A DNA stretch of 64,000 nt from Neoechinorhynchus agilis (lineage: Eukaryota > Animalia > Acanthocephala). A program made the translations under genes and the position numbers. The DNA lies in contig CM121341.1 of NCBI GenBank assembly GCA_051530055.1, positions 13,370,784 to 13,434,783 on the forward strand, in the 5' to 3' direction. This document shows, in pieces, positions 8,501 to 64,000 of this stretch (positions are counted from its first letter, which is position 1; each line of letters begins with the position of its first letter). The notes beneath the pieces are model-generated. The model worked only from the letters and a program-made list of their open reading frames with translations. It did no database searches and was not told the origin of the DNA.

Positions 8501-8796
8501 TTAGCTAAAACTTATATTTTCCATTCGCAACATAATTTTTATGCATTCTTATGCGTAAAATATTTGAGAAACCGTAATAATGCAAAAAAACCATCGTTCT
8601 TTACTATTTTTGGGCGTTTTAAGATTTTAAGCTAACATTTCGATTCCTTGTTCCGCAATTTTTCCATTTGGATTTTTTGGTCTCACTGTCGACTAAAAGC
8701 GTTTTATTGAATAAACAAAATACTAAATTATATTCTAGAATACAAACACGCTGAAGCAATAACGTTTATTGAGCTAAAATTTATATTTTCCATTAT
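5540..8796. repeat. Tandem satellite, 269-bp monomer, ~12 copies
   Basis: Anchor tagaataca recurs at 5821, 6090, 6359, 6628, 6895, 7165, 7434, 7703, 7972, 8237, 8467, 8736. Confidence 0.95.
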
Positions 8797-8879: not shown

Positions 8880-9690
8880 CGCATACGGGACCCAGACTTC
8901 TTTGCTCTTCAACGACCACCTCATTCGAAAGAGTACAGCAGGGATACCCTCTCGGTCCCATCGCTTTCGCACTTGCAGTGAATCCAATGGCCCACTCTCT
9001 CCATTCCAGCTTCAACGCTTGGTACCTGGACGACGCTACGCTCGGAGGTTATCCCTCCGCAGTACTGCACGATCTGGAGACACTCGTAAGGGAGACTGCG
9101 AGATTGGGCGTTGAGCTTAATGTAAGGAAATGCAAACTGTTGGTAATGAACATCGAAAACGAGTCAGCGCAGAGCGAAATCGTCAAAGGTTTTAGAAATC
9201 TGGCACCCGGTTTGGAATTGATCGGTCTAGACCGGCTGAGTCTTCTAGGGAGCTGCGTTTTTGATTCTAATGTGGAAAATGAAATCGACCATCTACTACC
9301 GAACATCACGATGCGAGGCTCTATTCCTGATCAAGAATACCCTCTTCATCCCGAAACTACTTTATATACTGCATACGGTTTCCTTCTTCAAGCACTTCGA
9401 AGCTCGATGACATTGCGAAGGCGTGTCTTGATCACATTTGAAATATCCAGCTATCGGACGAGGCCTGGCGACACGCTTCATTGCCTGTATCGTCCGGTGG
9501 CTTGGGTATTCGAAAAACAGTAGATTTGTCCTTACCCGCATTTTTAGGATCATTCGAAGGGAGTCGGGATCTGGTAAAACGTACATTGGAACCCAAGTTC
9601 TGTTTAGCGGACGAATTTCTAGTAGCGGTCCAGGAATGGTGGGAGAAGACGGGTTACAACCAAGTTCACGTGAATGAATCAGTCTATCTG
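8880..9690 (+). mobile_element. CRE-like non-LTR retrotransposon RT region, truncated and frameshifted
   Basis: Across frameshifts: VQQGYPLGPIAFALAV, NAWYLDDATLGG, GVELNVRKCKL, ALFLIKNTLFIPKLLYIL, LPVSSGGLGIR. Confidence 0.8.
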
Positions 9691-24469: not shown

Positions 24470-24541
24470 GGCTTGGTGGTCTAGTGGTATGATTCTCGCT
24501 TAGGGTGCGAGAGGTCCCGGGTTCAATTCCCGGCCAAGCCC
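24470..24541 (+). tRNA. trnP-AGG: tRNA-Pro (anticodon AGG), intronless
   Basis: Acceptor stem GGCTTGG/CCAAGCC, anticodon arm CTCGC-TTAGGGT-GCGAG, T-loop GGTTCAATTCC; eukaryotic tRNA-Pro pattern. Confidence 0.95.
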
Positions 24542-25419
24542 CATTACTAAATGAAACGTTCAGTGTGGATCCCAAAAGAACAGCCTCAGGTATCACTCCA
24601 ACCAAGAATATCAAAGGATAGCAAATGGCGAAAAGTTTCTTCATTTTTTAGGTTCTTCTTCAAAATGTTATTTTTCAGATCATCCTGAAGATTCTGGCGT
24701 TAATGGAAATAAAGCTCGAATATGCGCCTCTTCAATGGTTTAGAGCTAAATGAATTCCATTTTCCGATAAAATTTGCCTTGAGCCACTAAAACAATTTTC
24801 CTATGTAAAACCATTCTGCATATCGAATTCCTTCTTCTCGATATACTTAAATAAAGTCCCGGAAAGGACGGAAGGCTTCCTAATTGGACAGACGGATGAT
24901 GGAAGCTAATGTGTGCGAGTAATGCAACTTTTGTTTAAATATAATCAAGTTTTGTTTTCTTTTGAATGGACACCTAAGCCTTTGTAATGACAAAAAGAAA
25001 ATCTTTATTTCGGAGCTTTCGACGTCATGCGGCTTTTTTTTCAGAAATCTACAAAGGTTTCTAGTTAGTCAGGTCACTGACTTAAGTTGGTATCGCAAAC
25101 CGCGCCGTAGAAGCATAGTCATCCATCGAGATATCTATCATCTTTTTTGGACAATGAAACAGGAAATTTTGTTCATCGTCACTAATAGAGAATTGATGCA
25201 ATTTTCGCTGAATTGGCAAAATTGAACGTCCTTTGCTTGAACGTTTGAACGAAACACGTTCGCAACGCACTGAATCCGGACGCAAAATCATGGCCACACC
25301 ATGGAAAAGCATCACTCAAAGCTCCATAGCGACGAACGCGAGTTAGGTTTGTGGCCAAGGATTCGGTGAAGCCATCGCCGATGCACTAATATCTCAGACA
25401 GTTGGAAGGGGAAGGCGAG

Positions 25420-27712: not shown

Positions 27713-28962
27713 TACAGAACTGGACGAAAAAGAGGAATTTGTTAACGGAAAGAATGAATTATATTATAAATCGTTAGCAAATGCAAATTGAGGCCCATTT
27801 GCATCATTTACTACTTTTCGCACTTTTCGGAAAAAAAGGTGGGCGTAACAGTTTTCCAAGAAACTATAAATGAGGATTTGAAGCCTTCTAACCCTCAGAT
27901 GGATAAAGGATTATTGTAAAAGTTGAGCGTAAGTGCACCTTTTATTCCTAATTTTCAAACTATAAAAATATACTTTAAGGTTTTATTCATTCAACCTCTT
28001 CTCGAATGCTCGTATCATTCGCATCTTTGTCGACGTTCGTTAAGCGCCTTATTCACACTTCAAGGTCTGATTAAGCGAGGTTTCCAATTTCGAAATATTC
28101 CCCAATAATAAAGCAGTTCATCATCACCATTCAATATTTACCATACCGAAGGATCTTCTTGATGTGCGCCAAGAAGTGAGAGAATCAATACGCAGATCAA
28201 TTGATTGCCGAAATTGCCGGTCTACATTTTAGAAAAAGGGGAATCTTCGCGCCCAAGTGTCCATTTTCGTCAACAAAACTTAATCATAGTATAAAAACTT
28301 TAATGTGACGTCACACAAACGCCAACTAATTTCTCCATTATTATAACATTGTAATCAATTCTAAAGATATCCAAATGGCTTTCGCTTTTTACGTTTTGAT
28401 ACAATCATTCCGAGGGGGTATCTTTCGTGTATTAAGATTCAAATTTTTCATTTAAGAGCACAAAAAACGGTTTAAGATGTGTAACAACTGAGCTCTTCGA
28501 TCAAGTATTTTTAATACGCAAAATGGCCTTAAAGAATCGTTAGGTTTTATTTTTCTCTTTCAAAAGTCCGTTATATTATAACGTTTGGTATTGTTCTCTT
28601 TTCTCACTACGTTATTGTTTAGATCGCTTATCGACAACCGAGGGAGATCGTTAAAGGCGAATATATTTCGACTGATTGAATCCGTGTCATTGCTAATCGT
28701 TTGCAAGTATTTACGACAGTGCGTACGAAATTGTTTATCGCCAACGCTCTGTGTGTGTATTTGTTATTGAATACCGTACCGAACGCGGAAGAATCGTATA
28801 CTTGCCGTATTCATCGTCTTTCGCTCATCGAACAAGTATCTCAGTGTGTGTCTTATCAAGAGCTCGGGATTTCCGAAGCCGTTCTATTAAGGCGCTCGCA
28901 GCGTTCATAGTGTTTTACCCTTGAACTTTTTGAATATCTATTAATCCCTAATTATAGATTCA

Positions 28963-45763: not shown

Positions 45764-47687
45764 TAATCAGTCACACGCGTAATGAGCGACGAAAAATTGA
45801 CTTGTCACTGTTGTAGAATTCTTCCGTGCTAAAATAGAAACCAAGATCCGAAAAGAAGAATGCAGATTTATCGTAAACTCACCATTTTTTCCTATTGATT
45901 CGAGGAGAGCTCTGAAAGAAATTTTAATCGAAGTAAAAAAAAGAGGGATTGAAGTTCTTAGATTTTCCGAGTATTCATAAACGACCAAAATAAAAAAATT
46001 TTCATGAAAATTTGGGGAACTTTAATCCAACCTAATTAAGAACTCAAAAATAATCCACACTTAAACCAAAATACAGAATATACTTCTGTTGAACATAACG
46101 ATTATACCATGATACTTCACATTAATTTTAATGTAGTGATCACACGTCGTCGTAACTCGCAAGAAAATGTGGCATGAAAATATTATACAGTCTTAATTTT
46201 TATCGGTGCACAAGCCAACAACGAGGCAATGCTGCTAGCGTGATAGCGACAGCCGAGGAAAGAGAGAAGCTAAGATTTTGGATTGCATGTTTTGTACTTT
46301 ATTATTGTTTAAAATAGTGCAAATCAAAAACTTTCTAATTCTGTTAAATCTCTTCTTTAGCTCCGATTCCTCTTTAGAGTTCATTCCATCGGGATCGCGG
46401 CCAAAGGACGCGTCGCGATCGATTAAAGGTCGCAATATTTGAGATATTTCGAACGAAGTAACCTCACCTCATCAGTCATCTGAAATATGTTTTTCACATT
46501 AAGGTTTTACGCTGGAGTGCGTTAAATCGCCAAACCCGAAGATCGGGGACCAATTATCCGCTCGAACCTCTGCGCTGTACTATACTTTGATTAACCCGAA
46601 GGATTTTGTCGATGATCAAAATTTTAATCTTTCTTTTTCTCGGTTTTGCCACCCGCTGGGGGATTTATACTTTCACTTCACATCGATCGGATAATTCCGA
46701 CATTTCCTCGCAAGGTTTGCTACATCTAGAACACAAACATTATAGCTTTATCCTCTGGACTGATACTTATCGGGCAAGATGTTCCCTTGTGAATTTAAAC
46801 CCCTCCCCGGAGTGGCCTCCTCGAAGTGAATAACCAATAACTTCCCCCCTCCTGACCGGGGACTCGTAATCCACTCCAAAATCAACATTGATTCATCCAA
46901 TCAGAGCTCGAGTGCTCGCGAGGAACCAAAGCTACATGAAAACCTGTTCTTTGTGACTTTCCTTCTAATGAAACGTGTAAACAAAAGCCGGAGTCTCGAT
47001 ACGTTGCCTTTTATTTTGGAGATGATCTAAAATCCGTTTGAAGATTAAATTGTTCATGCTATTTTTATATGGCTTAAAAAAATTGAAGTAATTTGTTGAA
47101 TTCGATATTTCTGAGGCACACAGTGTTGTACGCGTTTATCAAGGTTGAGAATCTACGCAATGGTGGCTCATAAATATCGAACCTAATAAATTACATTAAT
47201 TTTTATGCCATAAAAAAGAGAATCAAAAGCTGCTCATCCATAATTAAACCCTTCAATAAAACACGAATATATTTAATATGAAATAAGCGACTTGCTTTTT
47301 TTGAATGTAGGCTTAGGATTTGCCTTACAATTGGCACAAAAATCGCATGAATTGCAAATTTAAATGGCAAAAGCTATCAAAGAAATCAAATGCTATAAGC
47401 AACAATTTTATTGGCCAACTTTCAAATTGGTCTGGTTTTTTTGACCAATCATAATTTGATGTGATTTGCGTGTTCAAAAAAAAGAGGATTGAAAAGTTCG
47501 TTGCTTGACTTTGGAAACTCGTAACGTTCGCAGTAACTTTTCTAATCTAAATCTTAAAATTTTTGATTGCAAATGCCAACTTTTGACATTACCTTAGTTT
47601 ATGAACTCAAGATTTAGTCGCGTTGGTTGCCAAGGAACTGAAGATTGGAATGCAACTTAACAGATAACGAATGTTAAAAAATTTGAA

Positions 47688-49853
47688 ATGTTTTCGGACA
47701 ACTACCAGAATGGATTAACAACGGTTTATTATTCGCTTGGTTCTAATCCTTTGAAGTTTTTCGACTACGTCGTAAGCTCAGTTAAGCATTTAGTGAATGA
47801 CTTAAGATAGGAATTCTTAGGTAAATGAAGGTGGAGACATTAGAAGAGTTCAAGATGAAGATCTATGCAGTCTAGTTCATGAGATACTGTCTGAAACTAC
47901 AGGGTATATCGTTACTTCAAAATCTTTTTACCTTTTTTTAATTCGGGAAGGACAACCTATGTCGTAGCTCCTGATAAATGTTTAAAATCTCTCGGAATCC
48001 ATCAACCAATTCTAAACATCATTGTGAAGAACCTTGAACTCCCGTTCTTAATGGACGTAAAGGTATTCTTTCAAAAATTAAATTCGACATGTTTTGATAA
48101 TTACCTAAGGTGAAAGATCTAATGGATGATACATTTACGCTTCAGTTTGGAAGTTTTTTTCGAAAAACACGTATAAGCAATTTTACGTCGTCTTTTCCGA
48201 TCGAATGGAAACTTGGATGGAATCAGCTCTGTTTTGATCTTAAGTATTACCTTGATCATGCATGTGGCGCAACGTTCAAAGAGTGTGTGGAAATAAAAGT
48301 TTGAAATTAAAATTAAAAATGTAATTGTAAAGTTTAACTTAGATTTACTCAAATTGCCGACTTCGAAGAATTGTCTTTTCCAACACTCCCATCACTGCTG
48401 ATGATGAGCTTCATAAGGAAATTGCCGAATGTTTGAGACGTCCTATGGATGCTAAAGAGGTTTGTGTGATTTTCACCTATCAAAATTTTTCAATTTTTGA
48501 ATCTTTGATTATCTCAATCAACGCTAAGAAGTAATTTGCTCTTTTCCAGGAATTGTCCATTGAAGGAGTGCGAAATTTGATACATCTAAGGTCGAAGGAC
48601 GCGATCAAGGTTTCTAAAGTTGCTTCTGGATCGAAGCTTAACGCACTTAATGGTACCAGTAGCCATGATAGGGGTTCACGAATTGAAGAAGTGGCTGAAT
48701 TTTCCAAACTTAGTTCAAAAATAAGAGATACTTTTGCACTTCCCAGATCACAGCTCCAACTAGCGCACCGTCAAGAAAAAGAGGTGAATACTGACATAAA
48801 TTCACGCAAGTGTCAACCTGAACCTTCTCTTAGAAAATATCTAGCACTCCGAGGAAAATAAAGCCAAAGAGTTTAAAGCGGAATACAGGATCTCTAAAAT
48901 CCAATCGGATGAGTAAAGCGCTCAGTATAAAGGATAAAACGACACGAGAAACGAATATTCTCAAAACATCGAGAAAAGGAGTATCTGGGAAAATAAAGAG
49001 TCCCGAAGATGATCCTGGAACGAGATCTATTCTAAGGAAAACGGGGTTTACATCCTCACGAAAAATAACACCTAAAATAGAAAAACGCACTGAGGACAAA
49101 GACCGTTTAAGTATTTCGAAAAGACTAAAGTCATCTGCCAGGACAACAAAAGCACCTAGGACAACAAAGAGGACCACCAAGAAATTAGAAGGAATCCAGA
49201 ATCCTAAGAAATCGGCACTCGCTAGTGCTATAGAAAAGAAAAAAAATGTTAGCTCTGTTTCCAAGACATCTGATCGAACAACTAAAAGCTTTAAGCTTAA
49301 TTCCATAAAGCGCTTAAAGCGAAAAGGATCAACCGCCACCTCCTTAGCTGAACAAAAAGGTAATCCGGCAAATGCAAAGAGAAGTATTCTACCTTCCAAA
49401 CATGTTAAACAAACCAATTCGGATTCTAAAAAATCTTCGTCCCTAAAAAGACGTGGCACTGTTGGAAAAAGCACAAGATCAACTGCAAGAAAAGGAAACG
49501 ACGGGAAGTCAGTTTTAGATCAAAAGTCTTCGAGAAAGGCGACTAATTCGACTTTAAAAACGAAATCTGTTAAGAAAGGCGTGGAAGGTAAGAGTATAAA
49601 AAAATCCCGAGGATCGGCAGTGGTAAAAGATTCGATTGTTGGAAAGCGAAACATCAAAAGCGAAAAGTCTGCAAATATTAGTAGAAAAGGTAGTGGGTCT
49701 CAACGGGCGGGAACAACAAAAGCACGTCGATCAAGTGCGAGAAAGTTAGACTCGAAGCAACTCGATGAATTAAACGAAAACACCGAAAAGCCCGGATCAT
49801 TCCAAGTGGAAAATCAGCCCGATCAAAATGAGCTTTCGGCTAAACTTGATTGA
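47688..49853 (+). CDS. CFAP20: CFAP20/BUG22-domain protein with a long Lys/Arg/Ser-rich tail, ~612 aa, 7 exons (47688-47771, 47821-47903, 47951-48062, 48110-48298, 48343-48459, 48550-48783, 48834-49853)
   Basis: Spliced product MFSDNYQNGLTTVYYSLGSNPL..IRRVQDEDLCSLVHEI..SLGIHQPILNIIVKNL..GWNQLCFDL..IYSNCRLRRIVFS follows the CFAP20 pattern. All six introns are GT-AG and in phase. Confidence 0.85.
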
Positions 49854-50058
49854 TTTTTCCTCTTATTGATTTTCAAAATAAACTTACTGAAAGGTGCCTT
49901 GGGCTTTTTAGCATTCTCATGAAATCTTTATTATCGATTTTGAAATGTTTTTAGAAGAATATGGCGTGTGTTCGAGTAAGGGATAATTTTTTAAAAGCAA
50001 CCTTAAAGAATGGCTACGTAATCTCATTTAAATTAGCACGTTAGATCGTAAATTGAAT

Positions 50059-51409
50059 TTATTTTAATATCTTTATGCAGTTCTTTATCTCCGTTGTGTA
50101 GCTAAGTCGAGACCATAGTTTCGATCGATTAAACGTTGTTCGGATGAGACAAACAAAAGACTTTGCGATCTTGGTGCACAAGCGACCAGTTCGTGCACCT
50201 CCATGAACGTGCCGTGTGTAGATGGAAGATGTTCGTGCAACAGCGGATGCCAAGTGAGCAATACACTTTTCGGAGAAGGTATTCCTTAAGCATTGGTTTA
50301 GCACCCATCTAGGTTTTCCTTTTAAGTAGACTTTTGGAAAACTATAATTTAGCTTGAATGCCGGCGGACTCCTAAATGAATCCAGTGTGTATTGTTGATA
50401 AACCAGAGACGAAGGTGAAATGTTCATAAAGCGAATTGATGGCGCAGATCCAAAATAAATCGGAGACACTGATGGAATATGAATGTACGTATCAATAAAG
50501 ATTTCTCCCTCCATATAGATCCGCACATTCTTGTCTATTTAGAGCCAGTAATCGATTCGTGTCTGAAATCCAAAATTGAGAAGTATGTTGATGGCCCCAA
50601 AGATTTACGAGGATCACATCTTCAATATATTCGGCCAAAATGCCCACCAGGTCGCTATCGTACTCGTTATTAAGGCCAAAGAAGACCTCGCCATCGAATC
50701 CATTACCGACTCCTATAGGAATGTGAGAAGCTACTATAGCTTTCTTGTTCATACTCCGTAACTCGCTAAAAGTTTCACGAAGCCATTTTAATTGCCAAAG
50801 TGGATCTTGTCCTCTATCTTCTTTTTCCATGTAGAGTATGGTATTCAGCACAATCAGATAGATTTGAGCAAATGTGACTTTGAGCTTATACCCCATAAAG
50901 CCTCATTCTTATTTAGAGCTCAATCTGACGCGATAATATCCTCCTTTAAGGAACTGAGATTCAATTTCCTGATTTCGAATCATCTTTCGCCATTGGCATT
51001 CATTTAATAGACGAGCGTAATACCTGTAGTCGGTTATTGGGATAGATGGATGCTGGTCATGATTGCCAATAACCGGAAAGATTGATGCATTTTTAGCCAC
51101 GTACTTTAGAGTCATTTCTACATACATTTTCATAGTCTTTTCGAATTTACTTTTGGTTCGACGACCTTCAGGGCCGGGCCATTTATGACTACAGAAATCC
51201 CCAAGCAGGAGATATGATGCGTCCGATGAATCCATCGATTCAATAAACTCAAGAGCTTTTCGATACAAAGCGATGGACGAATCGCAGCAGCCGTCGGCCA
51301 ATCGATTAGAAGTGTCTGATATGTTCAGATGTACATCAGTCAGGATGCGCAAGTGAACAGAAACTGCCATGTGAAAGCACGAGTGTAAAAGTAAATATAA
51401 ATAAATCAT
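50059..51409 (-). CDS. Secreted acid sphingomyelinase-like phosphodiesterase (SMPDL3 family); intron 1 of 45 nt after GGYYR (GT-AG); second junction non-canonical
   Basis: Signal peptide; metallophosphoesterase motifs TDVH, LLGD, IGNHD, SHIP, WGHQH, PSVSP. Confidence 0.8.
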
Positions 51410-51532
51410 CGATTTTATTATCTATGACGGAAAATCTTAACTCCAAACGGCAATCGTTCCCGTTGTATCGTCGTTGTGACTACGGTAAAAAAAACACTTC
51501 GAGCGCGCGGTTGTTTCAAAATATCTCACAAT

Positions 51533-51798
51533 ATGAATGTACCAAAAGGAATCCGAGTGATCAATGGTCAGAAAATTCTTTTATTAGGTGAGGAAAAACC
51601 CAACAAAGCTCACTTTGATCCAGAAAATTTCTCAATGTAAATGCAGGCGGATTTCTTCGTTGTACCCATAGCGTTTTACCTCGTATTTCTAGTTTCACTG
51701 AAACTCAGTTCGACCGCTCGCATAGGCGCAATAAACTAAACTTAACCGCCAAAGCAATAAGCGTTCGTTATTGCAAAATTAAAGCCGTCAAAGATTGA
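51533..51798 (+). CDS. Putative 57-aa spliced microprotein (introns 51588-51623, 51637-51692; 13-nt middle exon)
   Basis: Two in-phase GT-AG introns with strong donors (GTGAG, GTAAA) join an ATG to a stop; starts 124 bp from, and divergent to, the phosphodiesterase ATG. Confidence 0.4.
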
Positions 51799-53368
51799 TG
51801 TTCACTTTCGAAGGACACGGTAATAAGGATTCGGTTTAATTCCTACAGATGTATTAAACAAGGTGAAGATTTTAGGGTAAATATTGATGATTGTTTAATT
51901 TTAAGCCAACCAATGCCATCGACTTCAATATCTCTATCTCGAAATAAGACTCGGCAATATTGGACAAATTTTGGCCAAAAATCATCTAGACTACTTAGAG
52001 GAGATGTGAAATAAAAATCCAAATAAGAGAACAAAACGAGCGTTCAGCGATCCTTTTAGCTTACAAATATATAATTCTGATCTGCATCTTATAATGATCA
52101 AAGGAGCAACATTCTGTTCCGCTAAAGCGAAAACTATCAAAGTGTATTTTATAAGATAAGCAAAAAATTTAAATGACACAATTAAGACCATTAGGGTCGT
52201 TGTACGAATTCAAAATTCACAAACTGGACATGCGTTTTGGGCTCAAAATATCAGCATCGCCGTGTTGAGAGGCAATACGGCAAGTATTCGGGCGACAATT
52301 GAGGACGCCGGATAAGGTTTTCCTCCAAGATTTTGATAAATAGATTCAAGAATATATTTTGCTCAAAATTGTTTTTATTTTGGTCGATCATCAACATCCA
52401 ATAGGAATTGCTATAGTCGAATGTATATATTTCGGCTCACATATATAACCACCTTAAATGCATTTTTAACTATAATTAAATATCATCAAAAATTATTATC
52501 ATATCACAAATAGGAGGAGAGATTTCACGCTCGCAAAAACAATTAACTCTAAATCCAACGTTCACAACAGAATTCTTTTTAGTGTCAAAAAGAACGAAAC
52601 TAAGATTAAGCAAATCCCTTCAACTATAAAGAGTTTGCGTATGGCAAAGAAAATCAGCGTCAGTCTGGTGAGTTTTTAAAAGTCTTGAAGTGAGGCCTTT
52701 TCTGCGGCTGATAATTTTTCCGAAAAAACTATATTTTGTTGAACTCGTTGCAGATTAAGGAAGCCCTATAAAAATTCTATAATGAAACGTGAGTTGAGAG
52801 CTATTCATAACTGAGAACATAAAGTGCAGCAACAGCTGCGGAGGTTTGAGAAAGTTGCAATATACGATAAGCTCTCGTTTGGTGGCGGAAATTACAAAAT
52901 TAATGAGTTTTAATTAGGATCACTAACATAAGACGTAAAATAAAAGCAATTTTATGCCCATAAATGCTAATCTAAATTGCTCATATACTTTTAAACCTCG
53001 ATTCATCACAGAAAAGTTCCAAATCTTCAAAGATAATGCTCGCATATTAGTGAAATCGGTGTTAAAAATTGGTGTCCTTAAACGGTTAAAATTAACTAAT
53101 TCTTGAAGAATTTATAGTTACTGCAATAAAAGCGTTAGAATAGATTTTCACTGAGCCTAAACATGCGTGAGACAGCCGGAATGTTCATAAATTGACACCG
53201 GTTATTTAAACTGTGGAAGCTAAAAAACAATGAATGTAGGTTTCTATTAGGATTCTTGCCCCGAACGACAAAACAAAAAGCTTGAATCTCTAAGTCGCAC
53301 AAGACTCTAAGAAGAGCCCTGGTCGATCAATACGAGTTATATATCTAAAATCTAAATAATGCCCATAA

Positions 53369-54076
53369 TCACAATGCTTGACGGACATCGGCTTCTGGGT
53401 TAACAACCAGTATTTGTCCCTCCGGAAACATTGTGTTCTGTTCAGTGCATGTAATAACGGTTGCCCGTGTTGATGATGGTTGAACGTTTTGTGATCTTGG
53501 ATTATTCCGATTAAGTGGATTTCGATGTATAGCCAAATTACTCGTCGGCTGTGGCGTCAAGCATAATCCAGTAGGAAGTAATCGAATGATTTTCTCGAAA
53601 AATGCAGTGACACGTTTTAAAGGAAGGCCCATACTTTCAAGTCCCTTTAAAAGCTCAATGAAGTTTACGTTTTGATTTGTCCCGATTCGTGGGTTATAGT
53701 TTGATTGCACTGATTGAGAAGAAACGCTGTCCCTTTGAACCGGAGACTCATCGGCTAAACTAGGATTTTTCTAGGAGTAAAGTTCTAAATATCTTACTTG
53801 TTGCGAACCACGACGGACAAAAGGACACACCAACTAGGAAAATGACGAAGTATAGCCGGAATTTATTCGTCTAACGGAAACGATAGTAAAACATTTTCCT
53901 AAAAAATAACTTACTCTTCCATGTCTTTGCCTAGCTGCCAGCACGATCTCAGTCAATATGGCGTTAAATATATGATCCTTTGCAGTCCAGTCGTTTTGAT
54001 CGGTTTGGGTTGATTGACGCATTAGAGATATTCGATGAGCAAGTTTAGTGCTGTCATATTTTATCCAATGTGTCAA
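53369..54076 (-). CDS. Hypothetical spliced protein; introns 53914-53871 and 53797-53755; 5' end unresolved
   Basis: Two GTAAG..AG introns (44 and 43 nt) link three open frames in phase; includes one hydrophobic stretch (LYFVIFLVGVSF). Confidence 0.55.
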
Positions 54077-54749
54077 TGCAGCAAACGGCTAATTTTGAAT
54101 TCGAGATATTTCTGGAAAGACATGGACGCTGTTTACGAGCAATCGAAATGTATTTACCAACATTCAAATTCTATAAGTGTATTCGAACCCAATGAAGATG
54201 ATCCTTGTAATAAGCGCTTTCATACACTTATAAAAGGAGTGATCGGCAAATCAAAGCGCTCACTTTTTACACAACTGTTGTGGATTTCGAAGCTCTTGAA
54301 ATAAATTGTCAGCTTTGATTGAAAGGACGATTTTTACGAAACGAAGATCATGAAAAGTCGTGAAGATTTTAAGTAATCAAAATCTAAGAGCAGCAAAAAG
54401 TGGTTAATAAAACTTAGCGTTAAATTGAATTCGTCAACCATTAAATGAGAATTAATTCAAATAAAAAGAGAGAATAAAGCACACCTAAAGGAACAAAATG
54501 CGACAAGCACATTTTCAAAACTTCTATTTACCAGGAAAAGACAACTAAAAAGAATTCGTAAAAAAAATAAAGCTATTGCTAACCTTCAAAAAAATACAGT
54601 GAAACGTCGATTATTCGAAGCGTCAATCAACGGGGTTCTATAACCGCAAAATTCATAAAGGTGGTTTTCGTTTGAGGCCCAAAGTGCGACTTTCTCCCTA
54701 ATAAAAAGAAATTCTTGATTCATTAAACCCCTACGTTTATTATTTTCAG

Positions 54750-55110
54750 ATCGTCACGGCTTCAAATAGAAACAAAAATTGAAATATCGTCTTGAGAAAG
54801 GAGAAAGTGGAACGTCTCTAGAACAGTTTTGTAACGTTGGAAATTCAACGCTTTCTGGCAGTCGGAGACCTCGCGGGTGCCTAAAAGAAAAAAAGCGATT
54901 ATTTTCATTTAAACCACTTTCCATGCGTATCAAGAACTATTCGAAAAGGTCTCGTATCCGAAAGTTGTCCGGTCCCAATTAATTCGCGGATAATTAGCGT
55001 TCCATTGAGTGTCCATTTGAAGCATTCGAATTCACAGTAGAGAATAAGACCTTTGGTACTGTTAAAGGCCAAATTTTTAGAACACGGTTAATCAGGAAAC
55101 AAACTTACTT
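54750..55110 (+). mobile_element. Tigger/pogo-like DNA transposase N-terminal remnant
   Basis: RLEKGESGTSLEQFCNVGNSTLS (HTH-psq-like), followed by LLKAKFL (CENP-B HTH-like). Confidence 0.55.
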
Positions 55111-58100
55111 CAATGAATTAGAAAGACAATGATACGCAATCAAAGATGCTGAGCATCGAACGAAAGACGTAATTGGGAGCATAAATGCGTCCATAAAATT
55201 ATAAATTAATCACTATAATTCTGTGTTGAAGTGTGTCTTTTTCTAAGGCTGTTAATTTTCATACGAACGAAACTCACTAATAAGTCGCGACTCCTCCTCG
55301 GGAGCTATCTAAGAATAAGGAGTGATGCGTATAAACCCATAACCACGTATGGTTCATCGATATTAAGTGATTTCATGCGTTTGCCTGATCCAAGACCTCG
55401 GTTAGTTGTGTGCCCATTGGCAAGCCAGGCTAAAAAAAAGATAAAATAATCACCATCAGTTATTCTTTAAAGGATACAATAAGCATTATAGTAAATTGAA
55501 CCAAGTGGAAAAGGCTGAGAGACTGATGATTGAATCTCCAATAAATTAGTGAACGAGGGCAACCGTGAACGCTTATATACACAGGAATTATTAATTTTAT
55601 GGACGTAAATAAGATCCTTATTAAGCAAAGGGGGAAAGACAAATAAATCCAAAGGGCTAGGTGTCCAAATTAAACAATCCCCATTAAGTTATTGTTCGCA
55701 TTGTTTCCAGATCTCGTTGAGAGAGAAAAACCGGATTAAAAGCTGAAAACAAATTTCAAAATTAATTTATGAAAGCTTGATTTGTGGTGAACATAATAAC
55801 CCGAAAAAAACGTATTTTATTGTTCGCAAAATATTTCGAAAGAGGAAACCTCGCATTATTAATCATTGTTTCGCAAGACCGGGTGATTGTCTTCATCACC
55901 ATGTTAAAATTTACTATCCCGGTGGATTTTCTCTTGATATGAATTTCTAAAAAATTTTGTAAAAGCTGTCTTGGCATTATTTACAAGCATATGTTGTTTA
56001 GCAAAAGAAAAGGTCGAATTGACGTGGTCAAATTCGGCAAGATTCGCGACATACAGATAGAAGTGTATTGATTCTCAACGTTACGGCATCGGGCGTAAGT
56101 TGTTTCTCTCTCTGGAAGCCGTTTACCTCCCTTTCAACTCCTTTTTCTTCAGAAAATGGGTAAATCGTCATCGAAGCAGCAACCTCGAAGTCTTGCTCCA
56201 TCGTTGATTCCAATGGGACAAACAAATCCATTGTTTCAACCTCAACATCATATCATCCCAGTGCACATAATAACTCAAAACCAAACGTTTCCATCTCAAC
56301 TCCACAGGTTCGTGTCCCCATGTTCCCGGAACAATGGTTGTACCACTAATTTTTCGCATTCACAACCACTAGAGCACCAGTAATGTTTGACGATGCGGTG
56401 CTGATGGACCAAAGAGTGCGGCGTTACTGAAGCAATTGATGATTATTAGTAGTTGAGAGCCATTAGAACTTCATATTTTAGTTTAGTACAAAAAATTAAA
56501 CTTTTTTTCCAAAAAAAAATTGAAAATTTACAGAATACAGGAGACGTCCGATCGTAAGTTACAGTATTTTGTTTTATCAAAAGGATAATTTTTTACTATT
56601 TTCCGTCTCGATTGGTGGGCGACCCGGATAAAACGTATTTTATTTGTTTATAAAATATTTCGAAAAACCTCCTCGCATTATTCATCATTTACATTTTGCA
56701 CAAGACCGGGTACGTTATCTTCATCACCATGTTAAAATTCCCTATCCCGGTGGATTTTTGCTGCTGATGTGAATTTCAAAAAATTCAAAAAGGCATAAAT
56801 ATTGACATTATTTGGCTATGTTGTTAGCAAAAAAGGTCGAATTGACGTGGTCCAAATTCGGCAAAATTCGACATACAGATAGAAGTTTATTGATTCTCAA
56901 CGTTACGGCATCGAACGTAAGTTCACATCTTCTCTCTCTAGAAGCCGTTTACACTCCTTTCAACTCCGCTTTTTTCGCAGAAAATGGGTAAATCGTCATC
57001 GGCTTAGCAACACTCAGAATCTTGCTCCATCTACGTTGATTCCAATGGGACAAACAAATCCAATGTTCCAACCTCAACATCATATCATCCCGATGCCCTG
57101 TACTCAAAACCAAACGTTTCCATCTCAACTCACGAGTTTCGTCCCCATGTTCCCGGAACAATGGTTTGTGCCACCTTCAATTACACCATTCACAACCACT
57201 AGAGCACCAGTAATGTTTGACGATGCGGTGCAGATGGACCAAAGAGTGCGGCGTTACTGAAGCGATTGATGATTATTAGTAGTTGAGAACCATTAGAACT
57301 TCATATTTTAGTTTAGTACAAAAATTTAAACTTTTTTTTAAAAAAAGAAAAATTGAAAATTTTGAAAAAAAAACGTCAGTGTAAGTTACAGTACTTGTTT
57401 TTATCAAAGGATAATTTTTTACTATTTTCCATCTCGATTGATGGGGCGGCCGGATAAAACGTATTTTATTTTATTTCGCAAAATATTTCGAAAAGAGAAA
57501 CCTCCTCGCATTATTCATCATTGTTTCGCAAGACCGGGTGATTATCTTCATGCCATAGCTAAAATTTACTATCGGTGGATTTTCTCTTGATGAATTTCTA
57601 AAAATTTTGTAAAAAGGCATAAATATTGACATTATTTACAAGCTTATATATTTTTTAGCAAAAAAGGTCGAACTTGTTGTTGGAAAATTCAGCAAAGATT
57701 CGACATACAGATAGAAGTTTATTGATTCTCAACGTTACGGCATCGAACGTAAGTTCGCTTCTCTCTCTAGAAGCCGTTTACCTCCCTTTCAACTCCTTTT
57801 TTTCTTCAGAAAATGGGTAAATCGTCATCGAAGCAGCAACCTCAGAATCTTGCTCCATCTACGTTGATTCCAATGGGACAAACAAATCCAATGTTCCAAC
57901 CTCAACATCATATCATCCCGATGCCCTGTACTCAAAACCAAACGTTTCCATCTCAACTCACGAGTTTCGTCCCCATGTTCCCGGAACAATAGTTTGTCAC
58001 CGCTTCCGTTACACCATTCCACAACCGCACCGAGCACCAGTGATAATTTTTTGACGATGCGGTGCTGATGGACCAAAGAGCGGCGTTACTGAAGCAATTG

Positions 58101-60312
58101 ATGATTATTAGTAGTTGAGAGCCATTAGAACTTCATATTTTAGTTTAGTGCAAAAAATTAAACTTTTTTTCCAAAAAAATTGAAAATTTACAGAACACAG
58201 GAGACGTCCGATCGTAAGTTACAGTATTTTGTTTTATCAAAAGGATAATTTTTTACTATTTTCCATCTCGATTGGTGGGCGACCCGGATAAAACGTATTT
58301 TATTGTTCGCAAAATATTTCGAAAGAGGAAACCTCCTCGCATTATTTATCATTGTTTCGCAAGACCGGGTGATTATCTTTATCACCAGTTAAAATTTACT
58401 ATCCCGGTGGATTTTCTCTTGATGTGAATTTCTAAAAAATTCTGTAAAAGGCATAAATATTGACATTATTTACAAGCTTATATATTTGTTAGCAAAAAAG
58501 GTCGAATTGATGTGGTCCAAATTCAGCAAAGATTCGACATACAGATAGAAGTTTATTGATTCTCAACGTTACGGCATCGAACGTAAGTTCGCTTCTCTCT
58601 CTAGAAGCCGTTTACCTCCCTTTCAACTCCTTTTTTTCTTCAGAAAATGGTAAATCGTCATCGAAACAGCAACCTCAGAATCTTGCTCCATCTACGTTGA
58701 TTCCAATGGGACCAATAAATCCAATGTTCCAACCGCAACATCATATCATCCCGATGCCCTGTACTCAAAACCAAACGTTTCCATCTCAACTCACGAGCTT
58801 CGTCCCCATGTTCCCGGAACAATGGTTTGTGCCACCTTCAATTACACCATTCACAACCACTAGAGCACCAGTAATGTTTGACGATGCGGTGCTGATGGAC
58901 CAAAGAGTGCGGCGTTACTGAAGCAATTGATGATTATTAGTAGTTGAGAGCCATTAGAACTTCATATTTTAGTTTAGTACAAAAAATTAAACTTTTTTTC
59001 CAAAAAAATTGAAAATTTACAGAACACAGGAGACGTCCGATCGTAAGTTACAGTATTTTGTTTTATCAAAAGGATAATTTTTTACTATTTTCCATCTCGA
59101 TTGGTGGGCGACCCGGATAAAACGTATTTTATTGTTCGCAAAATATTTCGAAAGAGGAAACCTCCTCGCATTATTCATCATTGTTTCGCAAGACCGGGTG
59201 ATTATCTTCATCACCATGTTAAAATTTACTATCCCGGTGGATTTTCTCTTGATGTGAATTTCTAAAATTTTTTGTAAAAGGCATAAATATTGACATTATT
59301 TACAAGCTTATATATTTGTTAGCAAAAAAGGTCGAATTGACGTGGTCCAAATTCAGCAAAGATTCGACATACAGATAGAAGTTTATTGATTCTCAACGTT
59401 ACGGCATCGAACGTAAGTTCGCTTCTCTCTCTAGAAGCCGTTTACCTCCCTTTCAACTCCTTTTTTCTTCAGAAAATGGGTAAATCGTCATCGAAGCAGC
59501 AACCTCAGAATCTTGCTCCATCTACGTTGATTCCAATGGGACAAACAAATCCAATGTTCCAACCTCAACATCATATCATCCCGATGCCCTGTACTCAAAA
59601 CCAAACGTTTCTACTCTCAACTTCACGAGTTTCCATCCCCATGTTCAAAGACGATAGTTTTGTGTGCCACCTTCAATTACACCATTCACAACCACTAGAG
59701 CACCAGTAATGTTTGACGATGCGGTGCTGATGGACCAAAGAGTGCGGCGTTACTGAAGCGATTGATGATTATTAGTAGTTGAGAACCATTAGAACTTCAT
59801 ATTTTAGTTTAGTACAAAAAATTAAACTTTTTGTTTAAAAAAAATTGAAAATTTACAGAATACAGGAGACGTCCGATCGTAAGTTACAGTATTTTGTTTT
59901 ATCAAAAGGATAATTTTTTACTATTTTCCGTCTCGATTGGTGGGCGACCCGGATAAAACGTATTTTATTGTTCGCAAAATATTTCGAAAGAGGAAACCTC
60001 CTCGCATTATTCATCATTGTTTCGCAAGACCGGGTGATTATCTTCATCACCATGTTAAAATTTACTATCCCGGTGGATTTTCTCTTGATGTGAATTTCTA
60101 AAAAATTCTGTAAAAGGCATAAATATTGACATTATTTACAAGCTTATATATTTGTTAGCAAAAAAGGTCGAATTGACGTGGTCCAAATTCAGCAAAGATT
60201 CGACATACAGATAGAAGTTTATTGATTCTCAACGTTACGGCATCGAACGTAAGTTCGCTTCTCTCTCTAGAAGCCGTTTACCTCCCTTTCAACTCCTTTT
60301 TTTCTTCAGAAA

Positions 60313-60588
60313 ATGGGTAAATCGTCATCGAAGCAGCAACCTCAGAATCTTGCTCCATCTACGTTGATTCCAATGGGACCAATAAATCCAATGTTCCAAC
60401 CGCAACATCATATCATCCCGATGCCCTGTACTCAAAACCAAACGTTTCCATCTCAACTCACGAGCTTCGTCCCCATGTTCCCGGAACAATGGTTTGTGCC
60501 ACCTTCAATTACACCATTCACAACCACTAGAGCACCAGTAATGTTTGACGATGCGGTGCTGATGGACCAAAGAGTGCGGCGTTACTGA
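60313..60588 (+). CDS. 91-aa Pro/Gln/Met-rich protein with an N-myristoylation-like start (array copy)
   Basis: MGKSSSK...; intact ORF preceded by a GTAAGT..CTTCAG intron. Confidence 0.7.
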   Translation: MGKSSSKQQPQNLAPSTLIPMGPINPMFQPQHHIIPMPCTQNQTFPSQLTSFVPMFPEQWFVPPSITPFTTTRAPVMFDDAVLMDQRVRRY

Positions 60589-61142
60589 AGCAATTGATGA
60601 TTATTAGTAGTTGAGAGCCATTAGAACTTCATATTTTAGTTTAGTACAAAAAATTAAACTTTTTTTCCAAAAAAATTGAAAATTTACAGAATACAGGAGA
60701 CGTCCGATCGTAAGTTACAGTATTTTGTTTTATCAAAAGGATAATTTTTTACTATTTTCCATCTCGATTGGTGGGCGACCCGGATAAAACGTATTTTATT
60801 GTTCGCAAAATATTTCGAAAGAGGAAACCTCCTCGCATTATTCATCATTGTTTCGCAAGACCGGGTGATTATCTTCATCACCATGTTAAAATTTACTATC
60901 CCGGTGGATTTTCTCTTGATGTGAATTTCTAAAAAATTCTGTAAAAGGCATAAATATTGACATTATTTACAAGCTTATATATTGTTAGCAAAAAAGGTCG
61001 AATTGACGTGGTCCAAATTCAGCAAAGATTCGACATACAGATAGAAGTTTATTGATTCTCAACGTTACGGCATCGAACGTAAGTTCGCTTCTCTCTCTAG
61101 AAGCCGTTTACCTCCCTTTCAACTCCTTTTTTTCTTCAGAAA

Positions 61143-61418
61143 ATGGGTAAATCGTCATCGAAGCAGCAACCTCAGAATCTTGCTCCATCTACGTTGATTC
61201 CAATGGGACAAACAAATCCAATGTTCCAACCTCAACATCATATCATCCCGATGCCCTGTACTCAAAACCAAACGTTTCCATCTCAACTCACGAGTTTCGT
61301 CCCCATGTTCCCGGAACAATGGTTTGTGCCACCTTCAATTACACCATTCACAACCACTAGAGCACCAGTAATGTTTGACGATGCGGTGCTGATGGACCAA
61401 AGAGTGCGGCGTTACTGA
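61143..61418 (+). CDS. 91-aa array protein copy
   Basis: Intact ORF, same structure. Confidence 0.7.
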   Translation: MGKSSSKQQPQNLAPSTLIPMGQTNPMFQPQHHIIPMPCTQNQTFPSQLTSFVPMFPEQWFVPPSITPFTTTRAPVMFDDAVLMDQRVRRY

Positions 61419-61970
61419 AGCAATTGATGATTATTAGTAGTTGAGAGCCATTAGAACTTCATATTTTAGTTTAGTACAAAAAATTAAACTTTTTTTTCAA
61501 AAAAATTGAAAATTTACAGAATACAGGAGACGTCCGATCGTAAGTTACAGTATTTTGTTTTATCAAAAGGATAATTTTTTACTATTTTCCATCTCGATTG
61601 GTGGGCGACCCGGATAAAACGTATTTTATTGTTCGCAAAATATTTCGAAAAAGAGGAAACCTCCTCTCATTATTTATCATTGTTTTCGCAAGACCGGGTG
61701 ATTATCTTTATCACCAGTTAAAATTTACTATCCCGGTGGATTTTCTGATGTGAATTTCTAAAAATTCTGTAAAAGGCATAAATTGACATTATTTACAAGC
61801 TTATATATTTGTTAACAAAAAAGGTCGAATTGATGTGGTCCAAATTCAGCAAAGATTCGACATACAGATAGAAGTTTATTGATTCTCAACGTTACGGCAT
61901 CGAACGTAAGTTCGCTTCTCTCTCTAGAAGCCGTTTACCTCCCTTTCAACTCCTTTTTTTTCTTCAGAAA

Positions 61971-62246
61971 ATGGGTAAATCGTCATCGAAGCAGCAACCT
62001 CAGAATCTTGCTCCATCTACGTTGATTCCAATGGGACCAATAAATCCAATGTTCCAACCGCAACATCATATCATCCCGATGCACTGTACTCAAAACCAAA
62101 CGTTTCCATCTCAACTCACGAGCTTCGTCCCCATGTTCCCGGAACAATGGTTTGTGCCACCTTCAATTACACAATTCACAACCACTAGAGCACCAGTAAT
62201 GTTTGACGATGCGGTGCAGATGGACCAAAGAGTGCGGCGTTACTGA
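61971..62246 (+). CDS. 91-aa array protein copy
   Basis: Intact ORF, same structure. Confidence 0.7.
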   Translation: MGKSSSKQQPQNLAPSTLIPMGPINPMFQPQHHIIPMHCTQNQTFPSQLTSFVPMFPEQWFVPPSITQFTTTRAPVMFDDAVQMDQRVRRY

Positions 62247-62802
62247 AGCAATTGATGATTATTAGTAGTTGAGAGCCATTAGAACTTCATATTTTAGTTT
62301 AGTACAAAAAATTAAACTTTTTGTTTCAAAAAAATTGAAAATTTACAGAATACAGGAGACGTCCGATCGTAAGTTACAGTATTTTGTTTTATCAAAAGGA
62401 TAATTTTTTACTATTTTCCGTCTCGATTGGTGGGCGACCCAGATAAAACGTATTTTATTGTTCGCAAAATATTTCGAAAGAGGAAACCTCCTCGCATTAT
62501 TCATCATTGTTTCGCAAGACCGGGTGATTATCTTCATCACCATGTTAAAATTTACTATCCCGGTGGATTTTCTCTTGATGTGAATTTCTAAAAAAATTTG
62601 TAAAAGGCACAAATATTGACATTATTTACAAGCTTATATATTTGTTAGCAAAAAAGGTCGAATTGACGTGGTCCAAATTCAGCAAAGATTCGACATACAG
62701 ATAGAAGTTTATTGATTCTTAACGTTACGGCATCGAACGTAAGTTCGCTTCTCTCTCTAGAAGCCGTTTACCTCCCTTTCAACTCCTTTTTTTCTTAAGA
62801 AA

Positions 62803-63078
62803 ATGGGTAAATCGTCATCGAAGCAGCAACCTCAGAATCTTGCTCCATCTACGTTGATTCCAATGGGACAAATAAATCCAATGTTCCAACCTCAACATCA
62901 TATCATCCCGATGCCCTGTACTCAAAACCAAACGTTTCCATCTCAACTCACGAGTTTCGTCCCCATGTTCCCGGAACAATGGTTTGTGCCACCTTCAATT
63001 ACACCATTCACAACCACTAGAGCACCAGTAATGTTTGACGATGCGGTGCTGATGGACCAAAGAGTGCGGCGTTACTGA
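62803..63078 (+). CDS. 91-aa array protein copy
   Basis: Intact ORF; its acceptor reads TTAAG rather than TTCAG. Confidence 0.7.
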   Translation: MGKSSSKQQPQNLAPSTLIPMGQINPMFQPQHHIIPMPCTQNQTFPSQLTSFVPMFPEQWFVPPSITPFTTTRAPVMFDDAVLMDQRVRRY

Positions 63079-63631
63079 AGCAATTGATGATTATTAGTAG
63101 TTGAGAGCCATTAGAACTTCATATTTTAGTTTAGTACAAAAAATTAAACTTTTTTTCCAAAAAAATTGAAAATTTACAGAACACAGGAGACGTCCGATCG
63201 TAAGTTACAGTATTTTGTTTTATCAAAAGGATAATTTTTTACTATTTTCCATCTCGATTGGTGGGCGACCCGGATAAAACGTATTTTATTGTTCGCAAAA
63301 TATTTCGAAAGAGGAAACCTCCTCGCATTATTCATCATTGTTTCGCAAGACCGGGTGATTATCTTCATCACCAGGTTAAAATTTACTATCCCGGTGGATT
63401 TTCTCGATATGAATTTCTAAAATTTTTTGTAAAAGGCATAAATATTGACATTATTTACAAGCTTATATATTTGTTAGCAAAAAAGGTCGAATTGACGTGG
63501 TCCAAATTCAGCAAAGATTCGACATACAGATAGAAGTTTATTGATTCTCAACGTTACGGCATCGAACGTAAGTTCGCTTCTCTCTCTAGAAGCCGTTTAC
63601 CTCCCTTTCAACTCCTTTTTTTCTTCAGAAA

Positions 63632-63907
63632 ATGGGTAAATCGTCATCGAAGCAGCAACCTCAGAATCTTGCTCCATCTACGTTGATTCCAATGGGACAA
63701 ACAAATCCAATGTTCCAACCTCAACATCATATCATCCCGATGCCCTGTACTCAAAACCAAACGTTTCCATCTCAACTCACGAGTTTCGTCCCCATGTTCC
63801 CGGAACAATGGTTTGTGCCACCTTCAATTACACCATTCACAACCACTAGAGCACCAGTAATGTTTGACGATGCGGTGCTGATGGACCAAAGAGTGCGGCG
63901 TTACTGA
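63632..63907 (+). CDS. 91-aa array protein copy; 61-nt 5' UTR intron at 63568-63628
   Basis: Intact ORF; TATA-like TTATATATT upstream; ATTAAA downstream of the stop. Confidence 0.7.
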   Translation: MGKSSSKQQPQNLAPSTLIPMGQTNPMFQPQHHIIPMPCTQNQTFPSQLTSFVPMFPEQWFVPPSITPFTTTRAPVMFDDAVLMDQRVRRY

Positions 63908-64000
63908 AGCAATTGATGATTATTAGTAGTTGAGAGCCATTAGAACTTCATATTTTAGTTTAGTGCAAAAAATTAAACTTTTTTTCCAAAAAAATTGAAA

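Follow-up and report, generated by a model that had tools for sequence, protein, structure and literature searches.

Neoechinorhynchus agilis is a thorny-headed worm parasitic in mullet, and its compact genome of 46 Mb has been annotated by BRAKER with RNA-seq hints (PMC12690905); RNA-seq data of the species exist under PRJNA1223661. We analysed a stretch of 64,000 nucleotides of nuclear DNA from the 19.4-Mb contig CM121341.1 of this genome (assembly GCA_051530055.1, positions 13,370,784 to 13,434,783, forward strand), hereafter the window, the right end of which is occupied by a head-to-tail tandem array of units of approximately 830 bp, each laid out like a small protein-coding gene. An earlier reading of the sequence alone had placed at least ten such units from position 55795 onward. 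Sequence past the window was taken from flanking locus L001 of the same contig, which is identical to window positions 46156–64000 and reaches 3.26 kb further, giving 67 kb in all. An nhmmer profile of the unit together with blastn located exactly 12 full units of 828–837 bp each, about 10 kb in total, extending from 55800, within 5 nt of the start proposed earlier, to a window-equivalent position of approximately 65756. The window holds the first 9.9 units with ten start-codon anchors spaced 828–836 bp apart (Table 1), and two further anchors lie past its end, where L001 carries two more intact units (u11 and u12). The end of the array lies some 1.76 kb past that of the window, where ...GATTGGTGGGCGA gives way cleanly to unrelated sequence. 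No further unit, degenerate or not, was found elsewhere in the 67 kb by nhmmer or blastn, and a candidate extra degenerate unit to the left of u1 was rejected as nhmmer gave no match there. Tandem Repeats Finder was silent on the array because the longest period it considered was 500. The surroundings of the array are gene-dense and euchromatin-like, with ordinary genes on the flanks.

The intact units contain, in register, the gene-like parts that had been recognised in the sequence-only reading, namely a TATA-like box, an intron, a 91-codon open reading frame (ORF) and an ATTAAA hexamer, which are listed in Table 1 for the reference unit u7. Transcription start, splicing and polyadenylation of the unit are predicted from these motifs. 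Between the TATA-like box and the start codon, five of the seven intact units (u6, u7, u9, u10 and u12) are free of ATG, and the remaining two (u8 and u11) carry only a 12-codon upstream ORF. A C-to-T change in the putative leader exon (GACGTGG to GATGTGG), observed in u4 (58508), u8 (61833) and u11 (L001 18170), creates the upstream ATG and the 12-codon upstream ORF. The putative intron runs from GTAAGT to ...TTCTTCAG, as at 60249–60309 and 61079–61139, and its removal is predicted to join ...CATCGAAC to AAAATGGGT. There is no ATG in the intron, therefore the start codon is the same in spliced and unspliced transcripts. In every intact unit the acceptor (C/A)AG lies 3 nt ahead of the start context AAAATGG, with AAG in u9. 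A Rab1-like GTPase gene on the minus strand of the window (11303–10597) has two short introns (45 and 50 nt) whose donors are GTAAGT/GTAGGT, and the proposed 61-nt intron with its similar donor is thus typical for this genome. The ATTAAA hexamer is found 63–64 nt after the stop codon in the intact units and is replaced by AATAAA in u11.

The sequence-only reading had also pointed to an intron hairpin kept in the diverged u1 through G-U pairs. The 6-bp stem GCTTCT/AGAAGC of the u7 intron and the corresponding GTTTCT/GGAAGC of u1 are both present. The consensus intron folds at -8 kcal/mol, with a z-score of -3.5 for the intron alone and -0.5 in its 121-nt context, and the u1 intron folds at -3.9 kcal/mol (z = +0.2), which is no better than chance as judged from shuffled sequences. 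A conserved intron hairpin was rejected on the grounds that the fold is not significant in u1 or in the wider context and that the stem is mismatched in the intact u12.

The 12 units fall into a contiguous right-hand block of seven with intact 91-codon ORFs (u6–u12) and five broken left-hand units (u1–u5). The five right-hand copies within the window had already been called intact from the sequence, and u11 and u12 outside it are likewise. All of the residue differences noted earlier were recovered, namely QT/PI/QI at codons 23–24, P38H and L83Q, and two additional ones were found, P68Q in u8 and R87G in u11. Outside its coding sequence (CDS), u8 has seven private or near-private indels, its TATA-like box lacks 2 nt, and the upstream ATG is present. 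Among the broken units, u1 has lost the TATA-like box and carries two in-frame 3-nt indels and then, past codon 50 or so, a +2 frameshift, leaving an ORF remnant of 75 residues (56156–56383). Apart from its destroyed start codon, u4 keeps an open frame to 58921 and differs from u6 by just five substitutions.

Table 1. Features of the tandem array, with positions in window coordinates and, where indicated, in L001 coordinates.
Feature	Position	Strand	Start-codon anchor	Description
Tandem array of ~830-bp units	55800–64000	+		u1–u9 and most of u10; nhmmer, blastn, anchors
u1	55800–56621	+	56156	Pseudogene, most diverged (65–116 substitutions from other units); alignment
u2	56623–57446	+	56984	Pseudogene; stop at codon 8, +1 insertion
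u3	57450–58281	+	57813	Pseudogene; W60 TGG to TAG, later indels
u4	58283–59110	+	58646	Start codon destroyed by 1-nt deletion (AAAAT-GGT at 58646)
u5	59112–59946	+	59476	Pseudogene; frameshifting indels after codon 45
u6, intact CDS	60313–60588	+	60313	PI variant; unit 59948–60777, intron 60249–60309
u7, TATA-like box	60949–60956	+		CATAAATA, ~190 nt upstream of ATG
u7, putative 61-nt intron	61079–61139	+		Lies in the 5' leader, with GTAAGT donor, polypyrimidine tract and CAG acceptor ending 3 nt ahead of ATG
u7, intact CDS	61143–61418	+	61143	QT variant, reference protein MGKSSSK...RVRRY; unit 60779–61607
u7, polyadenylation-signal hexamer	61483–61488	+		ATTAAA, 64 nt after stop
u8, intact CDS	61971–62246	+	61971	PI variant with P38H, P68Q, L83Q
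u9, intact CDS	62803–63078	+	62803	QI variant; acceptor AAG for CAG; TATA-like box T-to-C
u10, intact CDS	63632–63907	+	63632	Protein identical to that of u7
Deposited model, 143 residues (P0001, hypothetical protein ACOME3_003141)	56156–57260 (L001 10001–11105)			u1 + u2
Deposited model, 179 residues	60313–61418 (L001 14158–15263)			u6 + u7
Deposited model, 173 residues	61971–63078 (L001 15816–16923)			u8 + u9
Deposited model, 194 residues	63632–64737 (L001 17477–18582)			Two adjacent units

Sequence comparison among the units points to exchange between them. The units u4 and u6–u12 are 5–26 substitutions apart, and u5, u3, u2 and u1 are progressively more diverged. At 20 informative sites, u4–u12 display incompatible groupings of shared variants, for example {u4,u8,u11}, {u4,u6,u8,u11,u12}, {u4,u9,u10,u11} and {u5,u8,u11}, and all four gametes are present at CDS sites nt 90 and 153. 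The identity of u1 is patchy, with blocks 100% identical to the consensus alternating with blocks at 70–78%. The mosaic of shared variants indicates gene conversion or unequal exchange; together with the four-gamete violations and the patchwork of u1 it supports concerted evolution as a process, in agreement with the sequence-only reading. Only the left edge has decayed. The last unit on the right, u12, is still just 8–16 substitutions from u4 and u6–u10, which suggests growth or renewal of the array at that end. Across the 12 copies, pseudogenes included, the lowest variation was observed in the 69 nt after the stop codon (61419–61487 and equivalents), with a nucleotide diversity (pi) of 0.022 versus 0.035–0.070 in the rest of the unit, which suggests either a hotspot of conversion or a constrained 3' untranslated region (UTR).

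The protein predicted from the intact units has 91 residues (10.4 kDa, isoelectric point 9.2, grand average of hydropathicity -0.41) and contains 14 Pro, 11 Gln, 9 Thr, 7 Met, 7 Ser and 7 Phe. It has no signal peptide or hydrophobic segment, the maximum Kyte-Doolittle value over a 19-residue window being 0.64. AlphaFold2 modelled it as coil throughout with a predicted local distance difference test score of about 55–60, except for a helix at residues 80–90, and the protein is predicted to be largely disordered. A homologue search among 5.8 billion clustered proteins matched only the locus's own deposited model P0001, and exhaustive phmmer against 1.84 billion representatives returned no homologue beyond that model. 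A second phmmer match, P0002 (E 1e-5), was rejected because it is made up of a weak match of approximately 23 bits that recurs seven times along a repetitive, probably mis-modelled protein. Pfam and JGI metagenome scans gave no match to the protein, and PDB sequences gave no accepted match, one at E = 0.025 being disregarded. The earlier suggestion of an undescribed family is supported by these protein, Pfam, PDB and metagenome searches.

The N-terminus of the protein, MGKSSSK, carries Gly2, Lys3, Ser6 and Lys7. The initiator Met and the GKSSS that follows it are kept in all 12 units, even the most diverged, except that u4 lacks the ATG itself, and (A)TGGGT, specifying Met1-Gly2, is found in every one. 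The start had been proposed to fit the consensus of N-myristoyltransferase (NMT), and the fit holds: Ser6 is a small residue at position 6, Lys7 is basic, there is no Pro at position 7, and the key positions are those of ARF6. The strict PROSITE pattern PS00008, G-{EDRKHPFYW}-x(2)-[STAGCN]-{P}, fails at Lys3, a point that weighs against assigning the protein to the NMT substrates. The over-strictness of PS00008 is known, ARF6 (GKVLSK) being a proven substrate, and its failure here reduces confidence in the assignment only slightly. The ARF6 peptide GKVLSKIF is a substrate of NMT1/2 at both Gly2 and Lys3, and NMT contacts its Ser6 and Lys7 (PMC7044312). Gly2, Lys3, Ser6 and Lys7 are common to ARF6 and the protein described here. 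Starts of the form Gly2-Lys3...Ser6-Lys7 also occur in the hippocalcin/neurocalcin/VILIP group. Past residue 7 the present protein has no sequence or fold kinship with ARF6 or hippocalcin-type proteins, and it contains no GTPase or EF-hand domain. If the protein is translated, its myristoylation appears fairly likely from these positions. A stable hold on membranes needs a myristoyl-plus-basic or myristoyl-plus-palmitoyl combination. With one myristate, two nearby lysines and no N-terminal cysteine, membrane binding would thus be weak and reversible at best, and the description of the protein as membrane-anchored in the sequence-only reading was too strong. Its designation there as a structural or effector protein is unsupported either way.

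We interpret the array, with a confidence only a little above even, as a lineage-restricted (orphan) protein-coding gene of N. agilis that has been amplified to 12 units and would encode a disordered product. Evidence in its favour begins with the seven contiguous intact ORFs, the canonical signals in register around them and an intron like those of the Rab1-like gene. None of the 11 indel events among the intact units falls in the CDS, which makes up 34% of the unit (binomial P = 0.010), although this test carries an ascertainment bias that counts against it, "intact" being defined in part by the absence of frameshifts. The broken units have 12 of 37 indels within the CDS, as expected from its share of the unit length, so the coding stretch has no intrinsic resistance to indels. 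The codon-usage log-likelihood is +9.3 for the frame of the ORF and -16 to -43 for the other five frames, with known coding windows at 17.3 +/- 5.2.

Several further observations weigh against a working gene or are neutral. Nine CDS sites vary among the intact units, three synonymously and six non-synonymously, and the ratio of non-synonymous to synonymous polymorphism (pN/pS) of 0.42 points towards constraint but is not significantly below 1 (Fisher P = 0.42). Substitution density in the CDS (9/276, 3.3%) does not differ significantly from that in the rest of the unit (29/537, 5.4%; P = 0.22). The pattern in u1–u5 is neutral, with a synonymous fraction of 0.27 compared to 0.24 expected and an even spread across codon positions, and dN/dS in the diverged copies was for this reason rejected as a trace of past constraint. 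An ATG-initiated ORF of at least 91 codons occurs in 10–11% of random 830-bp sequences of the same composition, a chance rate at which ORF length was rejected as coding evidence. The least variable segment is the 3' UTR and not the CDS, five of the 12 copies are dead, and exact look-ups of two 91-residue variants found neither on record as a called gene. In addition, the deposited BRAKER models are never single units but fuse adjoining ones.

The array could instead be a recently amplified, non-functional mini-satellite derived from a once real gene, in which ORFs persist only since the right-hand block is young and homogenised by conversion and no stable protein is made. Such a repeat is possible, if rather unlikely in our judgement. 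It would account for the lack of significant purifying selection in either test, for the neutral left-hand units, for the unremarkable ORF length and the lack of homologues and single-unit gene models, and for the five broken units, one of which (u4) is so close to the intact u6. The whole unit and its spacer are moreover about equally conserved (pi 0.9–3.1%), and a true satellite with a 269-bp period and approximately 12 copies lies in the same window. Without a gene origin, however, it is hard to explain why promoter-like, splice, Kozak and poly(A) signals lie in register on the longest ORF. These signals are kept in the young units, u11 even exchanging ATTAAA for AATAAA, and the intact block has no CDS indels among 11 whereas the decayed block has 12 among 37. 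A satellite is a non-coding unit that lacks gene signals and usually forms long arrays; the present array has just 12 copies in a gene-dense, euchromatin-like setting, with signals arranged around an ORF. Taken together, the evidence for a still-working gene is moderate and mixed. A genuine gene is almost certainly the source of the unit, and the balance tips modestly towards the young block (u6–u12) being still functional.

The fused gene models raise another alternative, in which transcripts span at least two units, a donor late in one ORF being spliced to the acceptor of the next unit, and encode repeated modules of about 88 residues. An example of such a donor is AGA/GTGCGG at codon 87, and MGKSSSK would be internal in every module except the first. 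BRAKER with RNA-seq hints (PMC12690905) produced four two-unit models at the locus. From our reconstruction, the 179-residue model fits residues 1–87 of u6 plus Lys and residues 1–91 of u7, the join from codon 87 to AAA-ATG being in frame, and the 173-residue model fits residues 1–81 of u8 plus Lys and u9. P0001 corresponds to the first 51 codons of u1 spliced into u2 out of frame with the u2 ATG. The donors that these models imply from their lengths of 143, 179 and 173 residues vary, however (GTTCGT in u1, GTGCGG in u6 and GTGCAG in u8), and match the GTAAGT/GTAGGT donors of this genome poorly. Every unit comes with a TATA-like box, a stop codon of its own and, 64 nt past that stop, a poly(A) signal; u1 and u2 are fused over frameshifts, no model exceeds two units, and the intact u12 has no deposited model. 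We consider multi-unit transcripts improbable. The fused models are probably an annotation artefact that arose through ab initio lengthening of a short CDS, and they give no independent support for expression. Since adjoining units are fused in them, neither the copy number nor the expression of ACOME3_003141 and its neighbours can be estimated reliably from the deposited annotation.

That the product is instead a non-coding RNA or a regulatory or transposon-derived element, for instance in the spacer, is very improbable: the 3' UTR and the spacer are the least variable parts across the 12 units, the spacer is weakly similar to two other loci in the window (nhmmer E 0.006–0.03) and a minus-strand spacer ORF of 65–66 codons recurs in several units, but Rfam gave no match at E<=1 over 55000–64000, there is no tRNA in the array, the similarity to other loci is marginal, and the minus-strand ORF has no Pfam match and sits where the frameshifting indels of u8 fall. 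On the same grounds, the 66-residue minus-strand ORF was rejected as a gene, and a spliced-leader RNA, 5S or small nuclear RNA gene within the unit was rejected for want of an Rfam or tRNA match. The two loci with similarity to the 5' spacer of the unit (positions 17–145) lie at 28071–28166 and 46429–46480. The match at 28.1 kb is an inverted pair, and both loci are upstream of genes (TFIIS-like and CFA20-domain). They may represent a dispersed repeat or a shared promoter module.

Two observations concern the processing of a putative transcript. Spliced-leader trans-splicing is documented in bdelloid rotifers but not in Brachionus (PMC1925144), and the acceptor ahead of the ATG could in principle be a trans-splice site. 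Nothing on trans-splicing in acanthocephalans was found in the literature, and the N. agilis genome paper makes no mention of the array locus, of introns or of trans-splicing (PMC12690905). A 20-nt mini-exon-like segment, AATACAGGAGACGTCCGATC, is present in the inter-gene spacer at 61520–61539 and at the same place in 11 of the 12 units, between an acceptor-like TTTACAG and a donor-like GTAAGTTA. It may have arisen by chance, serve as an alternative leader exon or be an element for downstream processing.

If the array is an amplified orphan gene, each unit would be a self-contained mini-gene in which a TATA-like promoter drives a non-coding leader exon of about 100 nt, a 61-nt GT-AG intron and a coding exon with the first AUG in good context (AAAAUGG), the 91-codon ORF and a 3' UTR of approximately 65–80 nt with ATTAAA. 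The seven right-hand units would be potentially active and the five left-hand ones decaying pseudogenes. Gene conversion or unequal crossing-over would hold the younger block at 96–99% identity, while the left edge escapes it and decays. After removal of Met1, NMT would acylate Gly2 co-translationally and possibly also Lys3, as in ARF6, and the acylated protein would associate with membranes peripherally and reversibly, not through a stable anchor. Multiple active copies would raise the output of an abundant small lipidated protein in a membrane-rich or sex-specific tissue. A more far-reaching version, which we regard as quite unlikely, holds that a taxon-restricted, possibly de novo gene with seven active copies supplies a disordered protein in great abundance, bearing lipid on Gly2 and perhaps on Lys3, that coats the cytoplasmic membrane face of the syncytial tegument or of a sex-specific tissue. 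If true, this would represent a new kind of lipid-tethered low-complexity protein and a parasite-specific marker or target, the copy number of which is tuned by unequal exchange.

Other features of the window lie outside the array. The 269-bp satellite is non-coding and AT-rich and occupies 5566–8794 (12.2 copies, 93% matches), in the part of the window with the lowest GC content (28%). Immediately to its right, an ORF of 181 residues (8978–9523, plus strand) contains a YLDD motif recalling reverse transcriptase; it has no Pfam match at E<=0.01 and may be a decayed retroelement fragment. A tRNA-Pro(AGG) gene is located at 24470–24542 on the plus strand. A calcineurin-like metallophosphoesterase gene divided among at least two ORFs (PF00149, E 9e-6) lies on the minus strand at 50492–51409, about 4.4 kb upstream of the array.

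Acanthocephala are a growing pest in fish aquaculture and very little functional genomics is available for them (PMC12690905, PMC9523657). If expressed, the gene would be among the few characterised lineage-specific genes of the phylum, and an abundant protein of this sort, with no counterpart in the host, would be a candidate for use in diagnosis as an antigen or as a marker of its tissue. The array would also offer a small and clean system for the birth, amplification and decay of orphan genes, with intact to long-dead copies within 10 kb. If not expressed, it would be a young gene-derived tandem repeat of little wider interest.

In kind, the array is probably a lineage-restricted tandem gene family that evolves by birth-and-death together with conversion, with a small, disordered and probably N-acylated product. 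The functional analogues considered below are none of them relatives. It resembles the 269-bp satellite in being tandem, head-to-tail and homogenised at about 12 copies, but only the 830-bp array has gene signals around a 91-codon ORF and indels that avoid this ORF in the young copies. Arrays that evolve by unequal crossing-over or conversion include the histone, 5S and spliced-leader RNA, antifreeze-protein and trypanosomatid multicopy genes. The present array shares with them full, here putative, transcription units arranged head to tail, high identity, mosaic variants and divergent or dead edge copies. It differs in its small number of copies (12), in decaying on the left side alone and in having an orphan product, for which a need for high dosage is only assumed. 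Small acylated hydrophilic proteins of parasites are also encoded at multicopy loci, as for Leishmania HASPB/SMP-1 and the trypanosome calflagins. Those proteins resemble the one described here in their small size, N-terminal acylation motif, lack of a signal peptide or transmembrane segment and repeated genes. There is no homology between them, however, and HASPB, SMP-1 and the calflagins are dually acylated (myristate plus palmitate at a nearby Cys) or contain EF-hands, whereas the first Cys of the 91-residue protein is at residue 39 and its host is a metazoan, not a protist. Ampliconic tandem genes with testis- or sex-biased expression, such as Drosophila Stellate/Su(Ste) and the mammalian X/Y ampliconic genes, offer a likeness by analogy only, in that the array is young and species-restricted, has many pseudogenised copies and displays rapid protein change, with six of the nine CDS polymorphisms being non-synonymous.

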